The notes under the pieces are model-generated. The model made no database searches and was not told the DNA's origin. It saw nothing but the letters and a program-made list of their open reading frames with translations. A DNA stretch of 64,000 nt from contig NZ_JMCB01000020.1 of NCBI RefSeq assembly GCF_000737315.1, positions 166,253 through 230,252 on the forward strand. Direction: 5' to 3'. This DNA is from Hyalangium minutum. Its GTDB lineage: Bacteria; Myxococcota; Myxococcia; Myxococcales; Myxococcaceae. Below are positions 52,821 to 63,293 of the stretch, piece by piece. Each line of letters opens with the position of its first letter. Positions within the stretch are counted from its first letter, which is position 1. Both the position numbers and the translations under genes were made by a program.

Positions 52821-54188
52821 ATGTCCCGACAGACTCTCTCCACGAAGTTCCTGGCTCTCTGTTGTCTGACAGCGCTTTCCGGATGCGCAATGGACCCCTC
52901 CGAGGAGGGCGCCCTGGACACCCCGCCCGAGGCCGTGGGGCAGACCCAGGGCGAGCTTGAGTACAACCCGGGCTCGGGCTGGAACCTGGCCTGGTCGGAT
53001 GAGTTCGAGGGCTCCGCCCTGAACACCAACAACTGGACCACGCTCAACAGCGACTTCGATCCAGTCACCAACAACTGCCAGTTCGGCACGGGCGAGATCG
53101 AGTACCCCCGGACGCAGAACGTCTCGGTGAGCGGCGGCAAGCTCATCCTCAAGGCCGAGCGCACCGCCGCCACCACGGTGTCCGACACCCGCTGTGGCGC
53201 AGCGCAGCGCACGCTCTTCTCCGGCCGCCTGCACACCAAGGGCAAGGTGGAGAAGACCTACGGAAAGATTGTCGCGAGCATCAAGGTGCCCTCCGGCTAC
53301 GGCATGTGGCCGGCGTTCTGGACGCTGGGCGCCAACGTCCAGTCGGTAGGCTGGCCCGCCAGCGGGGAGATCGACATCCTCGAGTGGCACTCCAACGAGC
53401 CCAACTGGATGAAGTCCGCCACGCACTGGTCCGTCGGCTCCCAGGCCGACTGGGGCACGGGCCAGAGCGGCGGCTACAACCTGGCCGACTCCTTCCACAC
53501 CTATGAGGTGGAGTGGAACGCCAACTCCATGGTGTTCCGGCTGGATGGCACGTACGTGGGCGCGACCTACGGCCACAACGAGACCGAGTTCCAGCAGAAC
53601 CACTACATCATCCTGAACCTGGCGCTGGGCGGGAACTGGTATGGCTTCCCGGCCGCCAGCAGCATCGCGCTGACGCAGGGCCAGCCGAAGACCATGGAGG
53701 TCGAGTGGGTTCGCTGGTACCAGCCGGGCAGCACGCCTCCGTCGGGTATCTCGGTGGCCAACCCCAGCTTCGAGTCGGGCCTGTCCAACTGGACGACGTG
53801 GACGCCCAACGGCACCGCGGGCGCGGCCTTCAGCGAGACGTACAACGGCGGGCACTCGGGCTCCTACCACCTGACGCACTATAGCGGCTCGCCCTTCGAG
53901 ACCTGGACGTATCAGGTGAAGACGGGCCTGGCGAACGGCAACTACAAGGTTCGCGCCTGGGTGCGGAAGGGCGGCTCGTTCAACATCTCCCGGCTGCAGG
54001 GCAAGACGAGCGGCTCCGCCGCGCCGGTGTACACGTCGCTTGGCACGTATGGGAACTGGACGCTGGTGGAGACGCCCGTCATCAACGTCACCAGCGGCTA
54101 CCTGGAGTTCGGCTTCCACACCCAGGCCACCACGGGCAACACCGCCAACTTCATCCACATGGATGATGTGGAGATCGTGAAGCTCTAG
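52821..54188 (+). CDS. GH16 beta-glucanase (laminarinase-like) lipoprotein with C-terminal carbohydrate-binding module
   Basis: Lipobox LSGC; WSDEF, GMWPAFW, EIDILE catalytic motif; NPSFE CBM. Confidence 0.9.
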   Translation: MSRQTLSTKFLALCCLTALSGCAMDPSEEGALDTPPEAVGQTQGELEYNPGSGWNLAWSDEFEGSALNTNNWTTLNSDFDPVTNNCQFGTGEIEYPRTQNVSVSGGKLILKAERTAATTVSDTRCGAAQRTLFSGRLHTKGKVEKTYGKIVASIKVPSGYGMWPAFWTLGANVQSVGWPASGEIDILEWHSNEPNWMKSATHWSVGSQADWGTGQSGGYNLADSFHTYEVEWNANSMVFRLDGTYVGATYGHNETEFQQNHYIILNLALGGNWYGFPAASSIALTQGQPKTMEVEWVRWYQPGSTPPSGISVANPSFESGLSNWTTWTPNGTAGAAFSETYNGGHSGSYHLTHYSGSPFETWTYQVKTGLANGNYKVRAWVRKGGSFNISRLQGKTSGSAAPVYTSLGTYGNWTLVETPVINVTSGYLEFGFHTQATTGNTANFIHMDDVEIVKL

Positions 54189-54241: not shown

Positions 54242-56650
54242 TCAGGTCCTGGCGGTGAGGCGGGCCATGGAGGGCGCCACCAGGGCCAGCAGGCCGTAGA
54301 CGCCCGCCGCGCAGGCGAGCGTCGCGCCGATTCCCCAGGACACCGAGAGGAAGACCGCCGCCCCAGAGCCCACGACGGACAGCACGCCGTTGACACCCCA
54401 GCACCACGCGGCCGCTTCCGGTGCGACGGCCAGGACGCGGCGCAGCCCCAGTGGGAACAGGAAGCCCAGGACGATCCCCGGCAGGCCCGCCACCAGCACG
54501 CACACCAGTGCGCGCTCCACGAAGGAGCGGGCCAGCACCGCCGAGATGACGCTCGAGGGCACCACGGACCACAGGGCGATGACCCCTGCGGCGAGGCCCG
54601 GCAGCAGCAGCAGGGTCCGCCCCGAGGTAGGGTCCAGTCGCTCGGACAGCGTGGAACCCAGCCCGGCGGCCAGCGTCAGCGGTGCCAGCGTCAGGGCCAG
54701 CGCCCAGGTGGGATCTCCCAGCAGCAGGTGGAGCCGCTGCGCCGTGGCAATCTCAAAGAGCATGAACCCCAGCCCGAGCGCGGCGAACCATGCCGGGATG
54801 ATCAGCTTGCCCACCGGGCCCAGGGGGGCCAGCGTGCCCTTCTTCCGCCACAGCGGAGGGAGGATCCACGCAACCGCCAAGAGCGCCGCGAGCCCGAAGG
54901 CAATCGCCATCGCTCCCACTGCCACCACGTTGCCCCGGAGCATGCCGCCGCCGCCGGAGCTCAGCAGCTCCTGGATCTTCGCGGGGGACAGCCAGGCCGA
55001 CAGCGGCACCTGGAGGAAGAAGAACGGCCGGTCATCCGTGGTCGCGGTCAGATCGACGCCGGCCTCAGCGGACAGGGCCTCGAGCTTCGAGTCATCGGCC
55101 GCCTCCGCCACCGCCGCGAGCCAGGGTGAGGCGGGCGGCTCTCCCGGGACGAGCAGCAGGCGCAGCCCTCCGGAGAGGGCCCGCTCGCGCACCACCGCGA
55201 CATCCTCGGGACGCAGGGGGGAGGGGCTGACAAGGATGTTGGCCAGCTCGCCGCGGGCCACCAACAGCAGGTGGCGCGAGGGGTCGGCGATCCCCCGGTC
55301 TCGCAGGGCCGCGGAGGCCAGGGCCACCAGGCGGGCCACCTCGAGGGGGCGCTCCGGATCGTACCAGCGCGAGAAGCTCACGATGCCGTCGGGCTGGAGC
55401 TTGTCCAGGAACAGCCGCCACGCCTCGCGCGTGTAGAGCGAGTTCTCCGTGAGCGTCATCGCGCCCATGCCCGTGGAGGCCCACGTGTCCACCAGCGAGG
55501 CCACGATGACCTGGAAGCGCTGGGGGCTCCGGGCCAGCCAGGAGCGGCCATCCTCCGCGTACAGGGAGACGCCCGGCTGCCGGGCCAGCGGCGCGTGCTC
55601 CGCGAGCGGCCCGCGCAGCATGTCCAAGATGAGGGGATTGACCTCGACGCCCGTCACGGAGGGGTGCCGGTAGAGGAGCGCCGTGGCAATGTCCCGCCCG
55701 CCGCCGACCCCGATGACGAGCACCTGGCCGGGCGGGCGGAGCCAGTGCGCCGCGCTGGTCAGGTCATAGCGCAGGTAGTCCAGGTCCGAGCGCAGGTCCT
55801 GGAAGGCGCAGCTCGCGGTGCCGGCCTCGCCATCGATCAACAGGAAGGCCTGGGGCGTCAGCGTCTGGGGTGCATCCTGGAGCGGCCCCCAGTAGATGGG
55901 GGGGACGCGGTGGAAGCGGCTGACCCGCACGTGGGAGATGGAGTTCCAGCCCTCCGCGGCGGCGGCTCCATCCTCGGGCGGGTGTCCCTTCACGTGGCGC
56001 AGCGCCAGAGCCTCCTGGGAGAGCACCGGCGCCAGCACGAGGAGCCCCATGAGCCCGGCCTTCAGGCGGGCGCCTCGGGAGTCCGCCAACGTGAGCAGGG
56101 CGAGCGCCGGTAGCACGGCCGTGGCCGCCAGCGCCCGGGGCGCTCCGAGCAGCGAGATGGCGGGGGCAGCCAGAAGGGCTCCCAGCGCGGATCCAGCGAG
56201 GTCCGCGCCGTAGACGAGCCCGGGCCGCTGAGCGCGCGTGAGCAGGGCCGCCAGGGCCGCGCCGCCCGCGGCAAACGGGAGCGCGATGATGACGGAGAGC
56301 TGCAGCAGGCTGACGAGTGTGCTCGGCAGGCGGGTGAGGTCCAGCACCACGGGGACGCGCACGAGCCACACCGAGGCCGCGCAGGTCAGCAGCGAGCCTA
56401 GGGTCAGCGCCACCGCGAGCGAGGCGCCCATGCGTTCGGGAGAGAAGCCTCGCGGCCAGAGGTGGACGGCGAGCGCGCCCACGCTCATGCCCAGCAGCCC
56501 CAGCGAGAGCGCGAGGTAGCCCAGCGAGTACCACGTCGTGACCGACAGCAGCCGGGCGAGGAGGACCTCCTGGGCCAACAGGGCGGAGGCGATCAGCGCC
56601 GCGGCTGCGGGAGCGTGCCGGAGAGGAGCGGCGGCGGACGGAGGAGCCAT
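54242..56650 (-). CDS. Membrane protein with central spermidine-synthase-like SAM-binding domain
   Basis: N- and C-terminal multi-TM blocks; VLVIGVGGGRD, GVEVNP, EDGRSWL, TDDRPFF. Confidence 0.8.
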   Translation of the reverse strand: MAPPSAAAPLRHAPAAAALIASALLAQEVLLARLLSVTTWYSLGYLALSLGLLGMSVGALAVHLWPRGFSPERMGASLAVALTLGSLLTCAASVWLVRVPVVLDLTRLPSTLVSLLQLSVIIALPFAAGGAALAALLTRAQRPGLVYGADLAGSALGALLAAPAISLLGAPRALAATAVLPALALLTLADSRGARLKAGLMGLLVLAPVLSQEALALRHVKGHPPEDGAAAAEGWNSISHVRVSRFHRVPPIYWGPLQDAPQTLTPQAFLLIDGEAGTASCAFQDLRSDLDYLRYDLTSAAHWLRPPGQVLVIGVGGGRDIATALLYRHPSVTGVEVNPLILDMLRGPLAEHAPLARQPGVSLYAEDGRSWLARSPQRFQVIVASLVDTWASTGMGAMTLTENSLYTREAWRLFLDKLQPDGIVSFSRWYDPERPLEVARLVALASAALRDRGIADPSRHLLLVARGELANILVSPSPLRPEDVAVVRERALSGGLRLLLVPGEPPASPWLAAVAEAADDSKLEALSAEAGVDLTATTDDRPFFFLQVPLSAWLSPAKIQELLSSGGGGMLRGNVVAVGAMAIAFGLAALLAVAWILPPLWRKKGTLAPLGPVGKLIIPAWFAALGLGFMLFEIATAQRLHLLLGDPTWALALTLAPLTLAAGLGSTLSERLDPTSGRTLLLLPGLAAGVIALWSVVPSSVISAVLARSFVERALVCVLVAGLPGIVLGFLFPLGLRRVLAVAPEAAAWCWGVNGVLSVVGSGAAVFLSVSWGIGATLACAAGVYGLLALVAPSMARLTART

Positions 56651-56757: not shown

Positions 56758-57132
56758 TCACTGCCCGGTGTAGGTGATCAGAGAGGCCGTGACGTTGACG
56801 CGGTCATGGTCCTCCTCGGTGAACAGCAGGGCATCGGCGCCCAGCTCGCAGGCCTTGGGCCGGAGCGCCTCGATGGCCTCCCGGCGCGAGCCGCTGTTGG
56901 TGCTGGCGCCGCCGACCATGGTCTTCACAGCCTGCTTGTAGGAGATCTCCCCGTACACCTCGTGTGCCCGATCCGGGGGATTCTTGACGAAGATGTCCAG
57001 CTGGCAGTCCGCGGGCTTGGGCTCGGGGAGCCGGCTCTCATCCACGTACCGCACCTTCACGCCTCCACACGCGCAGAGCACCGCGCTGGCGGCGAGGGCG
57101 GGCAGCAGCATGCGCTTCGACGAGGGCTTCAT
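56758..57132 (-). CDS. Small lipoprotein, YbjQ-like fold suspected
   Basis: Lipobox LCAC; YGEI, KACELGADALL. Confidence 0.65.
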   Translation of the reverse strand: MKPSSKRMLLPALAASAVLCACGGVKVRYVDESRLPEPKPADCQLDIFVKNPPDRAHEVYGEISYKQAVKTMVGGASTNSGSRREAIEALRPKACELGADALLFTEEDHDRVNVTASLITYTGQ

Positions 57133-57469
57133 GAGAGCGGCTCCTGAGGGAGAAGAGGAAGCCGCGTCATAGCACACGCTCGCAGGAGCCTGCGCTCCGG
57201 CAAGCAGCGCTTCAACGCTGATCCGAAGACGTACTCGTTGCTGTCACCGAATGCGACCACGTTGGGCAAGCGGACTCCCCCGGCTCCGGAGCAGACAGCG
57301 GCTCCAAGCATGCTTCCGGGTTCAACTCTCAACAGCTCCGCGCCCCGCCGCTTCATCCCACCTATGCGCCGGCGCGTCGGCAGCGGCTCGAAGTGGTTTG
57401 CACGCCCGGAACTTCTCGCAAGAGGATGCGCGCCCGGGTCACTCATCCGCCACGGCAATGGAGACACAC

Positions 57470-58083
57470 ATGGTTCGCTGGATTCAGGGAGCGCTGGTCG
57501 GAGTCATTGCGGTGGTGAGCTGTGCAGTGATGGGTGGATGCGCCGCCATGCGCGGCCAGGGACAAACGAGAGAATTGCCCGCATGGTGAGCGAGTACGAC
57601 GAGGGCATGTCCGCCGCCGAGAGAGTCTTGCCCGACTCGCCCGACGCAGCCGCAAACATCCGAGTGCCCTACCAGCAAGTCCGCCGCTGCCGGGAGGACC
57701 ACCCAAGCGAGGTTCAGGACTATCCGGATGTCGAGGTGCAGACCTCCCGCGGCACCCGCGGCTGTGGCGAGAGGCGCATCTCCCTGACGAGTAATGTGGA
57801 TGGGACGGGTGCCTGGACGCGCCCGATTCGCCAGGCGCAGGATGACGACTACATTCCGAAGCCGTGCGACAAGATGGAGAAGGCGGCCCCGCCTCCGCCC
57901 GGCAAGGATTTCGAATCGGCGCACGCTGGCATCCAGGGCCTCTGCGGCCCGACCGCGCGCATCTATTACCAGGAGTGGCAGCACCGGACGAATGCCCTGG
58001 GCGTGGCGGTGCAGCGCCAAGCGGGCGTCATCTGCCAGGTGGTCGACGAGACGCGTCCGAAGTGGTGGATGGAGAGCTTCTAG
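57470..58083 (+). pseudogene. Frameshifted Cys-containing lipoprotein gene
   Basis: Signal peptide and lipobox VMGGC in one frame (ATG 57470, GGAG RBS); body continues in another frame; one extra G in CAGGGA (~57560) would join them. Confidence 0.55.
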
Positions 58084-58089
58084 CCCTCA

Positions 58090-58385
58090 GCGCGAAGCGG
58101 AGCTCGCCGGGGCCGGCGGGCACCGCCGTGGGCGGCTCGTCCATGGGCGGCCTGGCCGCGCTCTATGCGCACTTCCGCCATCCGGACCTGTTCGGCGCCG
58201 CGCTGTGCATGTCACCGTCCCTGGGGTTCGCGGACAGAAAGATCTTCGACTACGTCGCCGCGCAGCCCAAGCCGTGGACCTCGCGCATCTACATCGACGC
58301 GGGCGCCAAGGAAGACGGGGGCTCCATGGTCGCCGACGCGGAGCGCCTGGTCCACCACCTGCGCGAGCGCGGCTGGGACGGCGGG
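58090..58385 (+). pseudogene. Internal fragment of an alpha/beta-hydrolase (putative esterase family)
   Basis: TAVGGSSMGGLAALY..F.HPDLFG...MSPS, IYIDAG.KE; no start codon, N-terminus or C-terminal catalytic His. Confidence 0.7.
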
Positions 58386-58538
58386 GTCCGTCAGCGGCCT
58401 CCTCGGCCCCTGTGCTCCCTCCCTCCCCCTCAACTGGGACCCCATCCCTCTATGCGCTTGCCTGTTTTTTCATTTTTTTTGGGACGACCGGGAATTCGGG
58501 CCCTCTTCCTCATGAACTCGCCGGTCACAGGAAGAACG

Positions 58539-59033
58539 ATGCGCAAAACGATGATGCCCCTCTTGGCGTTTGCGTCGCTGGCGCTCGTCCCCACGGCCTT
58601 GGCCGGCAACACCGTCCTGGCGCCGCACTCCGGCACGGTGACGGCCACTACGTACAACCCGGATGGCTCGTTCCACGGCGCTGTGGACATCACCCCCAGC
58701 GCCCCCTGCGGCTACTGGGGCGTCTCGACAGGGTTCGTGGGCTCTCTCTTGTGGAACATCACCATCAACAGCACCGCGACCACGTGCACGGCCGCCACCG
58801 GCAACGTGGCCCTGCACACCTTCGCGGACGGAATGGCGTTCCGCGTCAAGGACTTCCTCAGGACCCCCGCCTCGGCCGACAAGACGTGCGATCGCTGCCA
58901 GATCGGAGACTCGGGCATCAACACTCACCTCCAGGTCAACAAGAGCGGCACCAAGGACACCTCCTGGTACTCGGGCTACACCACCCAGGGTGAGGTCATC
59001 GATCTCGGAGAGATCATCGGCGTCATCAACTAG
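58539..59033 (+). CDS. Secreted M23-like protein P1 (catalytically degenerate)
   Basis: Sec signal; HGAVD; TCDRC; HxH position reads NTH; paralog of three neighbours. Confidence 0.7.
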   Translation: MRKTMMPLLAFASLALVPTALAGNTVLAPHSGTVTATTYNPDGSFHGAVDITPSAPCGYWGVSTGFVGSLLWNITINSTATTCTAATGNVALHTFADGMAFRVKDFLRTPASADKTCDRCQIGDSGINTHLQVNKSGTKDTSWYSGYTTQGEVIDLGEIIGVIN

Positions 59034-59096
59034 CGCGCTCCCGTTCCCGAAGTTTCCCCACACACGGGCCGGGAGACCGGCCGAGAGGCACTCACG

Positions 59097-59624
59097 ATGC
59101 GCAACATGATGAAGATGGCCCTGGCGGCGCTGGTTTCCCTGGCGCTCATTCCCACCGCGGCGGCCGCGCACACGGTCAAGGGGCCGTACTCCGGCACGGT
59201 GACGGCCACCACCTATTACCCGAGCGGCGGGTACCACGGCGCCATTGACGTCGCCAGCAGCAATGGCTGCGGCTACTGGGGCGTCGAGACGGCCGTGGTG
59301 GGCTCGGTCTCCTGGAACGTGACCATCATGACCACCGGCACCGTCTGCTACGGCAACGGCTACGAGAACGCGAACACAGCAGTGCACACCTGGGCGGACG
59401 GCTGGAAGTTCCACCTGAAGCACTTCCTCAAGACCGCCAGCTCGTACGACCGGACGTGCGACCGCTGCCAGGTCGGCGACGAGGGCGGAACCGGCCAGGC
59501 CACCGGCCCACACACCCACCTCATGCAGGAGAAGAACGGCACCAAGGACACCTCCTGGTACTCGGGCTACACCACCCAGGGTGAGTTCGTGGACCGCACC
59601 GAGACCCTCGGCGTCCTCGACTGA
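59097..59624 (+). CDS. Secreted M23-like metallopeptidase P2
   Basis: Sec signal; HGAID, LKHF, GGTGQATGPHTH resembling the M23 G.TG.STGPHLH motif. Confidence 0.75.
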   Translation: MRNMMKMALAALVSLALIPTAAAAHTVKGPYSGTVTATTYYPSGGYHGAIDVASSNGCGYWGVETAVVGSVSWNVTIMTTGTVCYGNGYENANTAVHTWADGWKFHLKHFLKTASSYDRTCDRCQVGDEGGTGQATGPHTHLMQEKNGTKDTSWYSGYTTQGEFVDRTETLGVLD

Positions 59625-59756
59625 GCGGCCGCCGCGGAAGCACGCGCCCCCGGGCGCCGAGGCCCTTCGTGAGGACCTGCTCCTCACGCGGGGCCTCTGT
59701 CTTTCCGGGCATTTACGCACTGTGCGCAAACATCCTAGATGCCTCGATTCGCTTGA

Positions 59757-59785
59757 TATCCAAGAATTTAATTATTTCTTGGGAT
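59757..59785. promoter_or_regulatory. AT-rich imperfect palindrome upstream of the HEAT gene pair
   Basis: ATCCAAGAATTTAATTATTTCTTGGGAT, preceded by TTGATA. Confidence 0.4.
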
Positions 59786-59840
59786 GGCGGTGAGTTCGGG
59801 GGCTCTACAGGGATGGAACCCCTCCACCAGGCCCACCGCC

Positions 59841-61055
59841 ATGACTTCAGCATCCAGCTCTTCCCCTCCGTCAGGCACCTCGAGCCGGCGCAAGCCGCTG
59901 CTGGTGGCCGGGGCCGGCCTCGCCGCCCTGCTGGCCGGAGTGGCGCTGATCGGCCGCGGTGGGAGCCAGGAGCGCCCGGCTGAGACGGAGCCCGCCGCCG
60001 CCGCGCAGCAGGCCCAGGCGAAGCAGGACCCGGCGCGCAAGACGGGCACCCCCGGCCCGGCCGCGCCCCTGGCCCCGGGCGAGGAGGCCAAGGCCCCGCG
60101 CTTCACCTCCACCCTCTGCTGGCAGGAACTGGAGCGCTTCAACGAGGGGGTGACGATCCACAACTTCCGCGAGTGGGCCGCGCCCCTGTTGAACTCGCGC
60201 GATGGGCTCGTCCGGGACTTTCTGCAGGAGCGCCTCACGGAGCTCATCGGCAAGAACCCGGCGAATGCGATCGAGGTGCTGGAGTGGTCCCGCGATGCCC
60301 AGGGCAAGTCCTTCAAGGTGTACCTGACGGCCGTGAGGGACTCCGAGGCCGTGCACCAGCCCCAGGTGGCCACGCGGCTCATGGACATGGGCCTGGACAA
60401 CACCCTCCCAGCCGAGCGGCGCGCGGGCCTGATCTCCGCCCTGGACACGCAGAAGCGGCTGGCACCGGCGGCGCTCGACAAGCTCACCACCCTCGCCAAT
60501 GATCCCGCCTCCGTCGATGCGGGCTGGGCCGCGGCCCGCACCATCGCGCGGGTCATGAAGCGCGAGTTCAAGCAGAACGCGAGCATCACCCCCTACATGG
60601 ACAAGCTGCTCACCATCGGGGCCCAGTCGCCCGACGAGCAGGTCCGCTATCTGGGACAGATGATGCCCATGCACGCCGCGCCCCTCCTCGATGCGACGGA
60701 GACCGAGCGGTTCGCGAAGATCCTCGTGGGCGAGGGCAACGAGGACGGCCGGGACGCGGCGGCGCACAACCTCTCCCTGTCCCTGGACAAGGGGAAGGTG
60801 CTGGACCTGTTCGCCAAGACCTTCGAGACCGAGCAGTCGCTGTGCGTGAAATGGGCCCTCTTCCGCTTCTCCGCGCGCACCGCCGGCAAGCGCGCCCTGC
60901 CCGTCATGGCGAACATGGTCGCCATGGACCCGCGCTTCCAGGCCATCTACCAGGACTTCGAGCGCATCTACGCCAGCGGCACCCTGGACTTCGTGCGGCT
61001 CTACAACAGCCTGCCCAACCAGGATCCCTTCAACTGCCTGGATCGCCACGAATGA
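59841..61055 (+). CDS. Membrane-anchored HEAT/ARM-like helical repeat protein
   Basis: N-terminal TM after RRK, Ala/Pro linker, then an all-helical body; ATGA overlap with the next gene. Confidence 0.65.
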   Translation: MTSASSSSPPSGTSSRRKPLLVAGAGLAALLAGVALIGRGGSQERPAETEPAAAAQQAQAKQDPARKTGTPGPAAPLAPGEEAKAPRFTSTLCWQELERFNEGVTIHNFREWAAPLLNSRDGLVRDFLQERLTELIGKNPANAIEVLEWSRDAQGKSFKVYLTAVRDSEAVHQPQVATRLMDMGLDNTLPAERRAGLISALDTQKRLAPAALDKLTTLANDPASVDAGWAAARTIARVMKREFKQNASITPYMDKLLTIGAQSPDEQVRYLGQMMPMHAAPLLDATETERFAKILVGEGNEDGRDAAAHNLSLSLDKGKVLDLFAKTFETEQSLCVKWALFRFSARTAGKRALPVMANMVAMDPRFQAIYQDFERIYASGTLDFVRLYNSLPNQDPFNCLDRHE

Positions 61056-62062
61056 GCACGGGAACTCCCATGACACGCACCTTGTGTTTCCGCACCGGCA
61101 CCCTCCTGCTCGCGCTCACGCTCTGCCCGCTGCTGCCTGGCACCGCCGCAGCCCAGGTGATCGCCCCGGGCCCCGCGCTTCAGGGCGAGAGCTGCTCGGT
61201 CGCAGGGTTGATGGACTCCATCCGCCACGGGCTCAAGTCGAACTCCGAGGCCTACAAGAAGTACCTGCGCACGCTGCTGCGCGAGTCCGCCGTCACCCTG
61301 CCCGATCAGGAGCTGCGGGCCGCGTTCGAGCGGGAGACAGACCCCGTCATGGCCGAGCACCTGGCAGCCGCCATGGTGGCGCGGACCGAGCGCGGGGCGG
61401 ACCCCGAGGCGATCAAGGCCGTGGCGAAGCGGGCCCTGGAGGAGCACGACCCGGCCCTGCGGTCCGCCGCGGTCCGCTCGATGCGGCGCACCAGCGCCCT
61501 GGAGAGCACGGACGGCGCGTACGAGAAGCTGGTGCGCGACGCCTCCCCCGAGGTGCGCCAGGAGGCCGCGACGAACATCGTCGAGGACATCCAGGAGGTC
61601 TACTCGGGCTATCACGGCGTGGCCTCGGACGCCGCGGTGTCGGCCGCGGCCGCCGCCACGGATCCCAAGGTGACGGCGAAGATCCTCGGCAACATGGACA
61701 CCCAGATGATCAGCGCCGGCTCGGCCGGCAAGATTCAGTCGCTGCTGCGCAGCGATGATGCCGAGGTGCGCAGGGCGGCGGCGCTCGCGCTGGGCGGGGT
61801 GCCCGCGGAGCAGATGGCCAACGCCCGGCAGTCGGTGCTCGCCATGTACCGCGACGAGCAGGACGCCAGCGTGCGCAAGGCGCTCCTGCAGAGCATCGCC
61901 CAGTTGGGCTTCTTTGGCGCGATCCCCGAGCTGCAGCGGCTGCGGAGCACCGACCCCAGCCTGGCTCCGGAGATCGACGCATGGATTCGAGTTCTCAGCT
62001 TGGACCTTCAGGAGTGGAACCTGATCCTGAGGGAGAAGCAGCGGCTGCAGCAGGTTCCGTAG
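61052..62062 (+). CDS. Secreted HEAT-repeat protein
   Basis: Signal peptide ending TAAA-Q; D.SPEVRQEAA, DDAEVRRAAALALG, DASVRKALL HEAT motifs. Confidence 0.75.
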   Translation: MSTGTPMTRTLCFRTGTLLLALTLCPLLPGTAAAQVIAPGPALQGESCSVAGLMDSIRHGLKSNSEAYKKYLRTLLRESAVTLPDQELRAAFERETDPVMAEHLAAAMVARTERGADPEAIKAVAKRALEEHDPALRSAAVRSMRRTSALESTDGAYEKLVRDASPEVRQEAATNIVEDIQEVYSGYHGVASDAAVSAAAAATDPKVTAKILGNMDTQMISAGSAGKIQSLLRSDDAEVRRAAALALGGVPAEQMANARQSVLAMYRDEQDASVRKALLQSIAQLGFFGAIPELQRLRSTDPSLAPEIDAWIRVLSLDLQEWNLILREKQRLQQVP

Positions 62063-62112
62063 AGACGTCCATCCCCCCCCAGGGCCGTGAACCGGCTCGA
62101 GAGGAAAAACCG

Positions 62113-62640
62113 ATGCGTAAGACGATGAAGCTGCCCCTGGCAGCCCTGGCTTCCCTGGCGCTTGTCCCCGCGACCGTGACCGCGCACACCGTGAAGGCGC
62201 CGTACACCGCCACGGTCACCACCACCACGTACTACTCGAGCGGCTCGTTCCACGGCGCCGTCGACGTCTCCAGCGGCAGCTGCGACTACTGGGGCGTGGA
62301 GACGGGCGTGGTGGGCTCGGTCTCCTGGAACGTGTCCATCCGGACCACCGCCCACTACTGCAACTCGGGCAACGGCAGCGGCAACCAGAACGAGGCGCTG
62401 CACACCTGGGCGGACGGCTGGCAGTTCCGCATCTGGCACTTCAACAAGACCGCCGCCTCGGTGGACAAGACCTGCGACCGCTGCCAGGTCGGCGACGAGG
62501 GCTCCACCGGTAACTCCACGGGCGCCCACACCCACATGCAGCAGACCAAGAGCGGCACCTACGACACCTCCTGGTACTCGGGCTACACCACCAAGGGTGA
62601 GGCCGTGGACCGCACCGAGACCCTCGGCGTCCTCGACTGA
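62113..62640 (+). CDS. Secreted M23-like metallopeptidase P3
   Basis: Sec signal; HGAVD, IWHF, GSTGNSTGAHTH; closest paralog of P2. Confidence 0.75.
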   Translation: MRKTMKLPLAALASLALVPATVTAHTVKAPYTATVTTTTYYSSGSFHGAVDVSSGSCDYWGVETGVVGSVSWNVSIRTTAHYCNSGNGSGNQNEALHTWADGWQFRIWHFNKTAASVDKTCDRCQVGDEGSTGNSTGAHTHMQQTKSGTYDTSWYSGYTTKGEAVDRTETLGVLD

Positions 62641-62771
62641 TTCAAGCAGCTCGAGGTGAAGCACCGCCTCGGCCAGGGAGCGGGACTTCCCGGTTCCGCT
62701 CTCCGGCCGGCTCTCCGCGGGACTTCCCGCACCTTCCCCACGGGGCTGGGATACCGGCCCGGAACCCTCCC

Positions 62772-63293
62772 ATGCCACGAACGCTGAAGGCCCTGGGCGC
62801 GCTCGCCGCGCTGGCCGCACTCGCCCCCTCCCCCGCTCCCGCCCGCAACGTCGAAGCGCCCCTGGCTGGCACGGTGACAGCCACCACGTACTCCTCGAGC
62901 GGCGCGTTCCACGGCGCCGTGGACATCTCCGGCGGCACTTGCGGCACAACCAACGTCACCACGGCGGTCTTCGGCTCGCTGGCGTGGAACGTGGTCATCA
63001 ACACCGCTAACACCATCTGCTACGCGAACCTCGCCATCCCGCAGAACGAGGTGCGGCACACCTTCGCCGACGGCTTCACGTTCCGCCTGATGCACTTCAA
63101 CCCGTCGGCGGCCTCGTATGACCGGACGTGTGATCGCTGCAACATCGGCAAGGCCAGCTCGCCCGGCAACCCGGACTCCGACATCCACCTCCAGTTGGAC
63201 AAGAGCGGTACCAAGGACACCTCCTGGTACTCGGGCTCCACCACCAAGGGCGAGGCCCTGTCCCTGGGCGAGCGCGTCGGCGTCCTCGACTGA
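62772..63293 (+). CDS. Secreted M23-like protein P4 (partly degenerate)
   Basis: Sec signal; HGAVD, LMHF, TCDRC; HxH position reads DIH. Confidence 0.7.
   Translation: MPRTLKALGALAALAALAPSPAPARNVEAPLAGTVTATTYSSSGAFHGAVDISGGTCGTTNVTTAVFGSLAWNVVINTANTICYANLAIPQNEVRHTFADGFTFRLMHFNPSAASYDRTCDRCNIGKASSPGNPDSDIHLQLDKSGTKDTSWYSGSTTKGEALSLGERVGVLD

Follow-up and report, generated by a model that had tools for sequence, protein, structure and literature searches.

M23 endopeptidases hold a central place in bacterial wall remodelling, in predation and in the design of lysins, and, to our knowledge, every well-studied member needs some form of latency control. The M23A enzymes beta-lytic protease, LasA and pseudoalterin, for instance, are proenzymes in which a large N-terminal propeptide gives latency. 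In Bdellovibrio, the ankyrin-repeat protein Bd3460 inhibits the bacterial predator's own secreted wall endopeptidases, Bd3459 and Bd0816 (PMC4686830). Here, we describe a locus of Hyalangium minutum, located within a 64,000-nucleotide stretch of contig NZ_JMCB01000020.1 (hereafter, the window, meaning the whole stretch analysed), in which four genes for exported proteins with a predicted M23 fold (P1 to P4) bracket two genes for exported HEAT/ARM-repeat proteins (HEAT1 and HEAT2). We conclude with high confidence that this six-gene locus is an Archangium-type P amplification of a conserved Myxococcota envelope cassette. The components are of known kinds (M23 peptidase and HEAT/ARM repeats); the three-gene association is previously undescribed in the literature searched, where we found no description of an M23-HEAT system, in agreement with what the first-pass annotation of the window had stated.

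The six open reading frames (ORFs) are co-directional, follow the order P1-P2-HEAT1-HEAT2-P3-P4 on the + strand, and span 58539-63293, in the final 5.5 kb of a window with a G+C content of ~68%. All were found as described in that annotation (lengths in amino acids, aa):

58539-59033, + strand: P1, exported M23-fold paralogue, 164 aa (ORF and ribosome-binding site, alignment, residue table)
59097-59624, + strand: P2, exported predicted M23-fold peptidase, 175 aa (AlphaFold2 (AF2) model, Foldseek, hidden Markov model (HMM) alignment)
59841-61055 (ORF from 59784), + strand: HEAT1, 404 aa (homologue alignment, AF2, Foldseek)
61052-62062, + strand: HEAT2, 336 aa, signal peptide and HEAT repeats (Pfam, sequence, 68-sequence alignment)
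62113-62640, + strand: P3, core M23-fold peptidase directly after HEAT2, 175 aa (identity, substitution rates, residue table)
62772-63293, + strand: P4, exported M23-fold paralogue, 173 aa (alignment, residue table)

The conserved unit is a cassette of three genes, HEAT1-HEAT2-P, and not the six that had initially been read as one apparatus; in the window, P has been amplified in a manner specific to Archangium. When one genome was scanned for each GTDB species, 65 loci were obtained, and in ~57 of these HEAT1 followed by HEAT2 stands beside at least one P (tblastn). The triad extends across Myxococcaceae and part of the Polyangia. Genera with the triad include Archangium, Cystobacter, Hyalangium, Corallococcus, Myxococcus, Pyxidicoccus and Citreicoccus, and it also occurs in metagenome-assembled genomes (MAGs) of Polyangia and Kofleriaceae; the exceptions are three distant M23 matches from Firmicutes or Patescibacteria and a few P-only loci. 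A protein of ~405 aa, a HEAT_2 protein of ~330 aa and a P of ~175 aa are encoded together in each of Stigmatella, Melittangium, Archangium violaceum and Vitiosangium, with differing flanks. Given hundreds of homologues and a gene order that recurs in dozens of genomes, the locus is far beyond chance. The HEAT genes are usually located 5' of P, and in most genera a single P follows HEAT2. The stop of HEAT1 and the start of HEAT2 overlap as ATGA in the window (gaATGAgc, 61052-61055); in other genomes, the two genes lie 14-15 nt apart or overlap by 1-4 nt, so that the coupling of HEAT1 and HEAT2 is tight in every case.

The number of P copies per locus ranges from 1 to at least 8, with amplification (4-8 copies) proceeding without matching amplification of the HEAT genes, and several paralogous triads may reside in the same genome. 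The array of A. lansingense, P-P-H1-H2-P-P, has the layout of the window, and those of A. gephyra and A. violaceum read H1-H2-P-P-P-H1-H2-P-P. Nucleotide similarity between the window and A. lansingense ends at 58464 and 63300, and the block therefore lies in a different genomic context from that in A. lansingense.

The linkage reaches beyond the P family itself. Weaker profile matches group into a further family, whose small, secreted proteins are rich in Cys and carry the motifs HxxLD, H.N, TCDRC, HVH and WY.G; it aligns to the P family with an hhalign probability of 99.9 at 30% identity. Those of its members that are named belong to Chondromyces, Polyangiaceae, Archangium and Corallococcus; some are called 'peptidase M23' by NCBI, and none is matched by Pfam M23. 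In all four contexts recovered for this sister family, its gene directly adjoins those for a protein of 388-402 aa and a HEAT_2 protein of 326-332 aa: P'-H1'-H2' in Corallococcus, H1-H2-P-H1-H2-P-P-P in one metagenome contig, and H1-H2-P both in a Polyangiaceae MAG and in another metagenome contig. HEAT1' is homologous to HEAT1 (hhalign probability 100, 32-35% identity), as is HEAT2' to HEAT2 (41% identity). The linkage of M23-like and HEAT genes that the first-pass annotation had singled out thus recurs in other genomes and is repeated in a family of ~30% identity. That the three genes stayed together through such deep divergence is our strongest evidence that P, HEAT1 and HEAT2 form a functional partnership, probably a physical one; a three-way linkage surviving to ~30% identity argues strongly for the latter. 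In one of two otherwise syntenic Corallococcus loci of the sister family, SdpC-toxin-like and SdpA-like genes lie ~3 kb 3' of the triad (L071:12711-13980); SdpC/SdpA is a cannibalism toxin system known from Bacillus.

Several single loci deserve mention. At six loci from Archangium and Hyalangium MAGs (L019, L040, L041, L056, L057 and L061), P is single or paired and no HEAT pair is present in the flanks covered, which extend to at most ~6 kb per side, some contigs being shorter; MAG SMAG_U11739, with P-only loci, also has complete triads on other contigs. In one MAG, tblastn recovers the P following HEAT2 as two overlapping segments that lie in different frames (L016:8948-9404), a sign of either a frameshifted pseudogene or an assembly error. 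The myxobacterial triad is present in records labelled 'Comamonas' (L044, BNCN01000008.1, 'Comamonas sp. KCTC 72670'; cluster members 'Comamonas sp. JC664'), together with a kinase 88.6% identical to MXAN_0552, a neighbour of the triad in M. xanthus, and these assemblies appear to be a Myxococcus genome that is mislabelled or contaminated.

P1-P4 share 52-70% mutual identity. The motifs that had been recognized at first sight, namely GTVT.TTY, HGA(V/I)D, four Cys including TCDRC, and DTSWYSG.TT.GE, are common to all four in the alignment, and the reported lack of LysM or SH3b domains holds, with no such or any other accessory domain detected in P1-P4 by Pfam or NCBIfam. Signal peptides, as well as the transmembrane anchor of HEAT1, were read from the sequence; in the P proteins, the signal peptide runs straight into the catalytic domain without a propeptide, leaving mature proteins of 141-151 aa that are mildly acidic (isoelectric point 5.3-5.7). 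The Pfam M23 profile (PF01551) scores P2 at 11.8 bits and P3 at 11.6 bits, below the gathering cut-off of 28.7, and does not match P1 or P4 at all; NCBIfam yields no M23 match for P1-P4. Profile searches of the PDB, started from the four paralogues or from 44 family members, reached only zoocin A (E ~1e-3) and LytM, and the P-family profile retrieved just 41 matches with E <= 1e-3 among 1.84 billion representative proteins. When the AF2 model of P2 (predicted local distance difference test, pLDDT, 87.7; predicted TM-score, pTM, 0.81) was compared with the PDB by Foldseek, all 50 of the 50 matches listed were M23/LytM domains (probability ~1.0, best E 1.4e-4), including ShyA, EnpA, DipM, LasA, StM23, Csd1/2, lysostaphin, beta-lytic protease and EnvC. 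The model thus bears out the fold proposed earlier, and the P proteins are predicted to constitute a very divergent M23 subfamily lying under the Pfam threshold.

HMM alignments to zoocin A and LytM place H109 on the catalytic 'AH' His and H139/H141 on HxH, and the HxxxD motif of the P proteins corresponds to H47 and D51. Across an alignment of 96 copies extracted from 69 loci, the zinc ligands H47, D51 and H141 and the four Cys (C58, C84, C121 and C124) are invariant (96/96), and the full M23 catalytic set (H47, D51, H109, H139 and H141) is found in 77 copies; two further copies outside the extraction pattern, read by eye, keep HxxxD, H109 and HxH. In the window, the complete set is present in P2 and P3. 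P1 has lost both catalytic His (H109 to D and H139 to N, with HxH reading NTH) while keeping the zinc ligands and the four Cys, and P4 keeps H109 and the zinc ligands, with H139 replaced by D (HxH reads DIH). Since P1 and P4 lost one or both catalytic His, the initial description of four M23 enzymes was overstated: the M23 fold and the zinc ligands extend to all four proteins, but HxH only to P2 and P3.

The degenerate copies follow a pattern. The catalytic set is complete in all aligned P copies immediately 3' of HEAT2, and every degenerate copy is an 'extra' one. The layout degenerate-active-H1-H2-active-degenerate is found in the window, A. lansingense, A. gephyra, A. violaceum and one MAG, and copies without H139 occupy the position of P4 in A. 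lansingense (H109/D139), A. gephyra (Q/D), A. violaceum (H/L) and MAG L017 (H/Q). The paralogues also differ in their divergence from Archangium orthologues, as listed below with the ratio of nonsynonymous to synonymous substitution rates (dN/dS, Nei-Gojobori); because codon bias driven by G+C probably compresses dS, the dN/dS values are meaningful only as a ranking:

P3: 88-96% identity, dN/dS 0.2-0.4, the most conserved paralogue
P2: 82-86% identity, dN/dS ~0.56
P4: 71-90% identity, dN/dS 0.4-0.7
P1: 67-74% identity, dN/dS 0.7-1.3

The extra P copies are relaxed or diversifying, yet none has lost its signal peptide, Cys, zinc ligands or C-terminal motif.

Compared with the described enzymes, the P proteins share with M23B domains (zoocin A, LytM, lysostaphin, EnpA and StM23) the fold (Foldseek probability 1.0; target-normalised TM-score 0.58-0.66 for EnpA and StM23), the HxxxD ... 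H ... HxH arrangement by HMM and a size similar to that of the isolated catalytic domains. They differ from them in sequence (only 15-24% identity), in the four invariant Cys, including a CxxC where the canonical 'V.xGQ' hairpin sits, in the family-specific GT.DTSWYSG tail after HxH, in lacking SH3b or other targeting domains, and in being produced by a Gram-negative bacterium. The M23A enzymes, which like P are small, disulfide-containing M23 proteins exported by Gram-negative competitors or predators, align structurally over the full length (~183 columns); unlike them, P has no propeptide, and no HEAT partners have been described for M23A. Active and degenerate M23 paralogues encoded together, as in P1-P4, are known from Helicobacter pylori Csd1-Csd2 and from the dLytM factors EnvC, NlpD and DipM, which are among the structural matches; these proteins carry coiled-coil or LysM domains, absent from P, and are not known to have HEAT partners. 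Classical dLytM factors are usually devoid of zinc ligands, whereas P1 and P4 keep all three and have lost non-ligand catalytic His, which represents an intermediate state.

HEAT2 exceeds the Pfam thresholds for HEAT_2 (41.9 bits, cut-off 27.7, 1.3e-10) and HEAT (36.7 bits, cut-off 23.5, 3e-9). It begins with a signal peptide, as judged from its sequence, and the 68-sequence alignment has 63 positions at least 95% identical and one invariant Cys, C48. HEAT1 matches no Pfam or NCBIfam family; its 176 homologues are all myxobacterial where the organism is named, and are either unnamed or called 'HEAT repeat domain-containing protein'. The mean column identity of the HEAT1 alignment is 67%. These homologues have 400-409 aa and the N-terminus MTP.S, and the start of HEAT1 is therefore assigned to the ATG at 59841. 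In the AF2 model, a short basic N-terminus is followed by one transmembrane helix, a ~55-residue disordered linker rich in Ala/Pro/Gly/Gln and a ~310-residue all-alpha solenoid, with residues 95-400 all-alpha at pLDDT >90. Foldseek matches include IntS4, Vac8, importin-alpha, beta-catenin and YibA (probability 1.0); at an E of only ~5e-3, the ARM/HEAT match of the solenoid is generic. Because RRK precedes the transmembrane segment, HEAT1 is predicted to be oriented N-in/C-out, with its solenoid tethered in the periplasm. The transmembrane anchor of HEAT1, also present in the model, the signal of HEAT2 and the ATGA overlap are all as first noted, although a second HEAT2 ATG at 61070 fits the orthologue N-termini at least as well as that at 61052. 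HEAT1 has three invariant Cys (C94, C336 and C400 on the 405-aa translation from 59838, one above the 404-aa numbering); together with the one of HEAT2, the mature proteins hold four, and one HEAT1-HEAT2 disulfide is conceivable as pure speculation. BLASTP detects no paralogy between HEAT1 and HEAT2.

The UniProt automatic name of MXAN_0550, the HEAT2 orthologue of M. xanthus, derives from 'PBS lyase HEAT-like' (CpcE/CpcF-type) proteins. CpcE and CpcF act as a heterodimer and are likewise two HEAT-like repeat proteins encoded by adjacent genes. However, they are cytoplasmic lyases that attach chromophores to phycobiliproteins, whereas HEAT1 and HEAT2 are exported and belong to non-photosynthetic bacteria; the likeness exists at the repeat level only.

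An exact-sequence look-up identifies the orthologues of the triad in M. xanthus DK1622 as MXAN_0549 (P), MXAN_0550 (HEAT2) and MXAN_0551 (HEAT1). Over 96 h of development, MXAN_0549-0551 are expressed at ~30-90 reads per kilobase per million (RPKM), with less than 3-fold change (PMC6791715 supplement). In a predation transcriptome whose title terms the predators 'constitutively toxic', MXAN_0550 (log DE 5.65) and MXAN_0551 (4.29) are up in 'Predator Nutrition vs Predator Starvation', that is, higher in nutrient medium than in starvation buffer, and neither is in the live-prey or dead-prey lists in the parts of the supplement consulted (PMC5857379, Suppl 3A for the former). The direction of the comparison was checked with cspC, a gene listed as down whose level is 0 fragments per kilobase per million (FPKM) in nutrient medium and high under starvation (PMC5857379). 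Expression of the triad is constitutive and not prey-induced. These data speak against a sporulation-specific role, one of the two that the first-pass annotation had offered, and do not separate predation from housekeeping. A development-versus-predation supplement has no entry for the triad genes, and MXAN_0549-0553 are not named in any main text of the literature searched; publications on M23, Myxococcus and predation dealt only with other enzymes (Lysobacter LssL) or were generic reviews.

Three sequence elements bear on how the genes of the window may be transcribed:

58440-58500, + strand: AT/T-rich stretch 5' of P1 against a background of ~67-70% G+C, candidate promoter region for P1-P2
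59679-59694, + strand: terminator-like hairpin and T-rich tail 3' of P2, a pattern match from a consensus scan
59700-59785, + strand: AT-rich intergenic stretch, likely promoter region for HEAT1-HEAT2-P3(-P4)

The hairpin after P2 and the AT-rich stretch before HEAT1 suggest two transcription units, P1-P2 and HEAT1-HEAT2-P3-P4; a sigma-70 consensus scan gave no match in the 58440-58500 stretch. Long antisense ORFs at 58470-59729, 59871-61076 and 62008-62949 (all on the - strand; 300-420 aa) lack independent support and were rejected as high-G+C artefacts.

As for the surroundings, a secreted GH16 beta-glucanase-like protein with a ~150-aa C-terminal extension is encoded 4 kb upstream (52821-54188, + strand; Pfam Glyco_hydro_16, 4.5e-18). 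Between its gene and P1 lie those for a large membrane protein with a spermidine-synthase-like domain (54242-56650, - strand), a small lipoprotein-like ORF (56758-57177, - strand) and an esterase (57864-58400 region), and none of these four neighbours is kept beside the triad elsewhere. The sole recurrent neighbours in a clustering of flanking ORFs, Ser/Thr kinases, were considered as part of the system and rejected, since they are not orthologous to one another outside two clades with local synteny (Myxococcus/Pyxidicoccus and Cystobacter/Melittangium/Hyalangium). Beside the triad of Melittangium, Cystobacter and Hyalangium lies the gene for a ~1029-aa zf-HC2/Ser-Thr kinase/TPR protein, whose orthologues show 61-80% identity from one genus to another (L002:8567-12546; downstream of P in L013, L030 and L035, upstream and on the opposite strand in L023 and L036), followed in Melittangium by the gene for an extracytoplasmic function (ECF)-type sigma factor. 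The zf-HC2/kinase/TPR gene is missing beside the triad in the window, Archangium, Myxococcus and Corallococcus.

All six products of the locus carry export signals or an N-in transmembrane anchor, which puts them in the same compartment. Our leading reading, which we hold tentatively and as somewhat short of probable, is that the P proteins are lytic M23 enzymes without propeptides that a HEAT1-HEAT2 complex restrains in the periplasm. Following Sec export of all six products, P2 and P3 would act as active zinc endopeptidases cutting peptidoglycan peptide cross-links. A HEAT1-HEAT2 heterodimer on its ~55-residue flexible periplasmic tether would bind them, replacing the propeptide or occluding domain of other Gram-negative M23 enzymes, and the producer's own wall would be spared, either while the enzymes are in transit or after delivery back from kin. 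Outside the cell, or once delivered by vesicles into the prey periplasm, the enzymes would be free to lyse the prey wall. P1 and P4, in which the fold and the metal site are kept, may serve as non-catalytic partners, be it binding modules, decoys or heterodimer subunits. We infer the formation of the HEAT1-HEAT2 complex, its binding of P and the outcome of that binding, and the same applies to the multi-subunit apparatus and the physical P-HEAT contact envisaged by the first-pass annotation.

Self-protection is favoured because the P enzymes have no built-in latency device, because they are disulfide-stabilised minimal domains like secreted lysins, because they amplify and diversify independently of the HEAT pair, and because the loci are non-syntenic and accessory-like; the amplification of P, its variable contexts and the fast evolution of the extra copies look like weaponry rather than core wall machinery. 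The repeat-protein factor of Bdellovibrio provides a further reason, as a precedent (PMC4686830). There, too, a predator encodes a wall endopeptidase with an adjacent periplasmic helical-repeat protein, and one repeat factor covers more than one paralogous enzyme, as a single HEAT pair would do for the P proteins (PMC4686830). The parallel has its bounds: Bd3459 and Bd0816 are PBP4-type serine DD-endopeptidases and not M23 enzymes, Bd3460 is a single small ankyrin protein, whereas here two large HEAT/ARM proteins are present, one of them membrane-tethered, and inhibition has been demonstrated for Bd3460 (PMC4686830) but is conjectural for the HEAT pair.

A number of points weigh against restraint by the HEAT pair. 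The contact between P and HEAT, the activity of P and its localisation are all predictions. Immunity proteins tend to be small and to come singly; a pair of large, highly conserved solenoids with a membrane tether on one would suit scaffolding or positioning at least as well. Many secreted lysins are basic, unlike the acidic P proteins, and there is no charge complementarity between these and the HEAT domains, which are likewise acidic. Orphan P loci without an adjacent HEAT pair exist (L019, L040, L056 and L057), and neither MXAN_0549 nor the other triad genes were found in the part of an outer membrane vesicle proteome supplement that was consulted. Finally, enzymes restricted to prey-type bridges, such as Gly-Gly, would make self-protection needless.

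The main rival, which we regard as rather unlikely, holds that HEAT1-HEAT2 is a membrane-anchored scaffold or activator recruiting the soluble M23 enzyme to the cell's own peptidoglycan, for growth, passage of the gliding machinery or envelope maintenance, with the degenerate paralogues as dLytM-like regulatory subunits. The transmembrane anchor and long flexible linker of HEAT1 would suit such a role, as would the unusual conservation, for solenoids, of both HEAT proteins, the steady vegetative expression, higher in rich medium, and the acidic, not lysin-like, character of P; moreover, degenerate yet retained paralogues recall Csd2, EnvC, NlpD and DipM, all of which are among the P2 Foldseek matches. 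However, variable P copy number, several triads per genome and non-syntenic flanks even within Archangium are atypical for core wall machinery, the high dN/dS of the extra copies speaks in the same direction, and P, with four invariant Cys and without a wall-targeting or coiled-coil domain, is unlike housekeeping M23 proteins.

The remaining explanations rank below the scaffold. We consider it improbable that, instead of inhibiting P, the HEAT pair serves as its dedicated chaperone in export, folding or metal loading, for instance by handing P to a secretion system. The tight genetic linkage and translational coupling would be expected of a chaperone, a single HEAT pair can serve several P paralogues, and invariant Cys in each partner (four in P, three in HEAT1, one in HEAT2) would permit mixed-disulfide intermediates; yet P loci occur as orphans, the fold matches of HEAT1 include nothing enzyme-like or metallochaperone-like, and no periplasmic HEAT-repeat protein is known to us as a chaperone of M23 enzymes. 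We give as little credence to the P proteins being M23-fold proteases acting on proteins, or metal-binding non-enzymes, with the HEAT pair as substrate or receptor. Some M23A enzymes also cut elastin-type proteins, and the similarity of P to characterised M23 members is marginal (11.8 against 28.7 bits in Pfam, best PDB sequence match at E ~1e-3), but the M23 constellation is complete in 77 of the 96 aligned copies and in all aligned copies directly after HEAT2, and every strong structural match is a wall-acting M23/LytM domain. A sporulation-specific machine that removes the wall in myxospore formation would accord with the degradation of peptidoglycan by sporulating M. xanthus and with the confinement of the named matches, bar two probably mislabelled 'Comamonas' records, to the largely spore-forming Myxococcota, but was rejected as very improbable on the M. 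xanthus expression data, with less than 3-fold change over the 96-h time course and higher levels in nutrient medium than in starvation buffer.

Collectively, these results describe an M23 subfamily that is invisible to Pfam, has lost all built-in control elements and is co-inherited with two exported HEAT/ARM proteins. In its broadest form, the restraint proposed here would make the cassettes Myxococcota-wide envelope weapon systems, in which propeptide-less M23 lysins are neutralised in the producer and its kin by a membrane-tethered HEAT/ARM heterodimer acting as a two-component inhibitor, with dead, zinc-site-retaining paralogues as adaptors or decoys and amplified P widening the prey range; this extension we consider doubtful. 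If true, myxobacterial predation would gain a component that has so far gone unrecognised, and M23 enzymes a new class of device for immunity or latency. The presence of the cassette in the model organism M. xanthus (MXAN_0549-0551) makes it directly accessible to standard genetics. Should the HEAT pair be an inhibitor, it would represent a new form of predator self-protection; should it be a scaffold, it would represent a new type of hydrolase-positioning complex.

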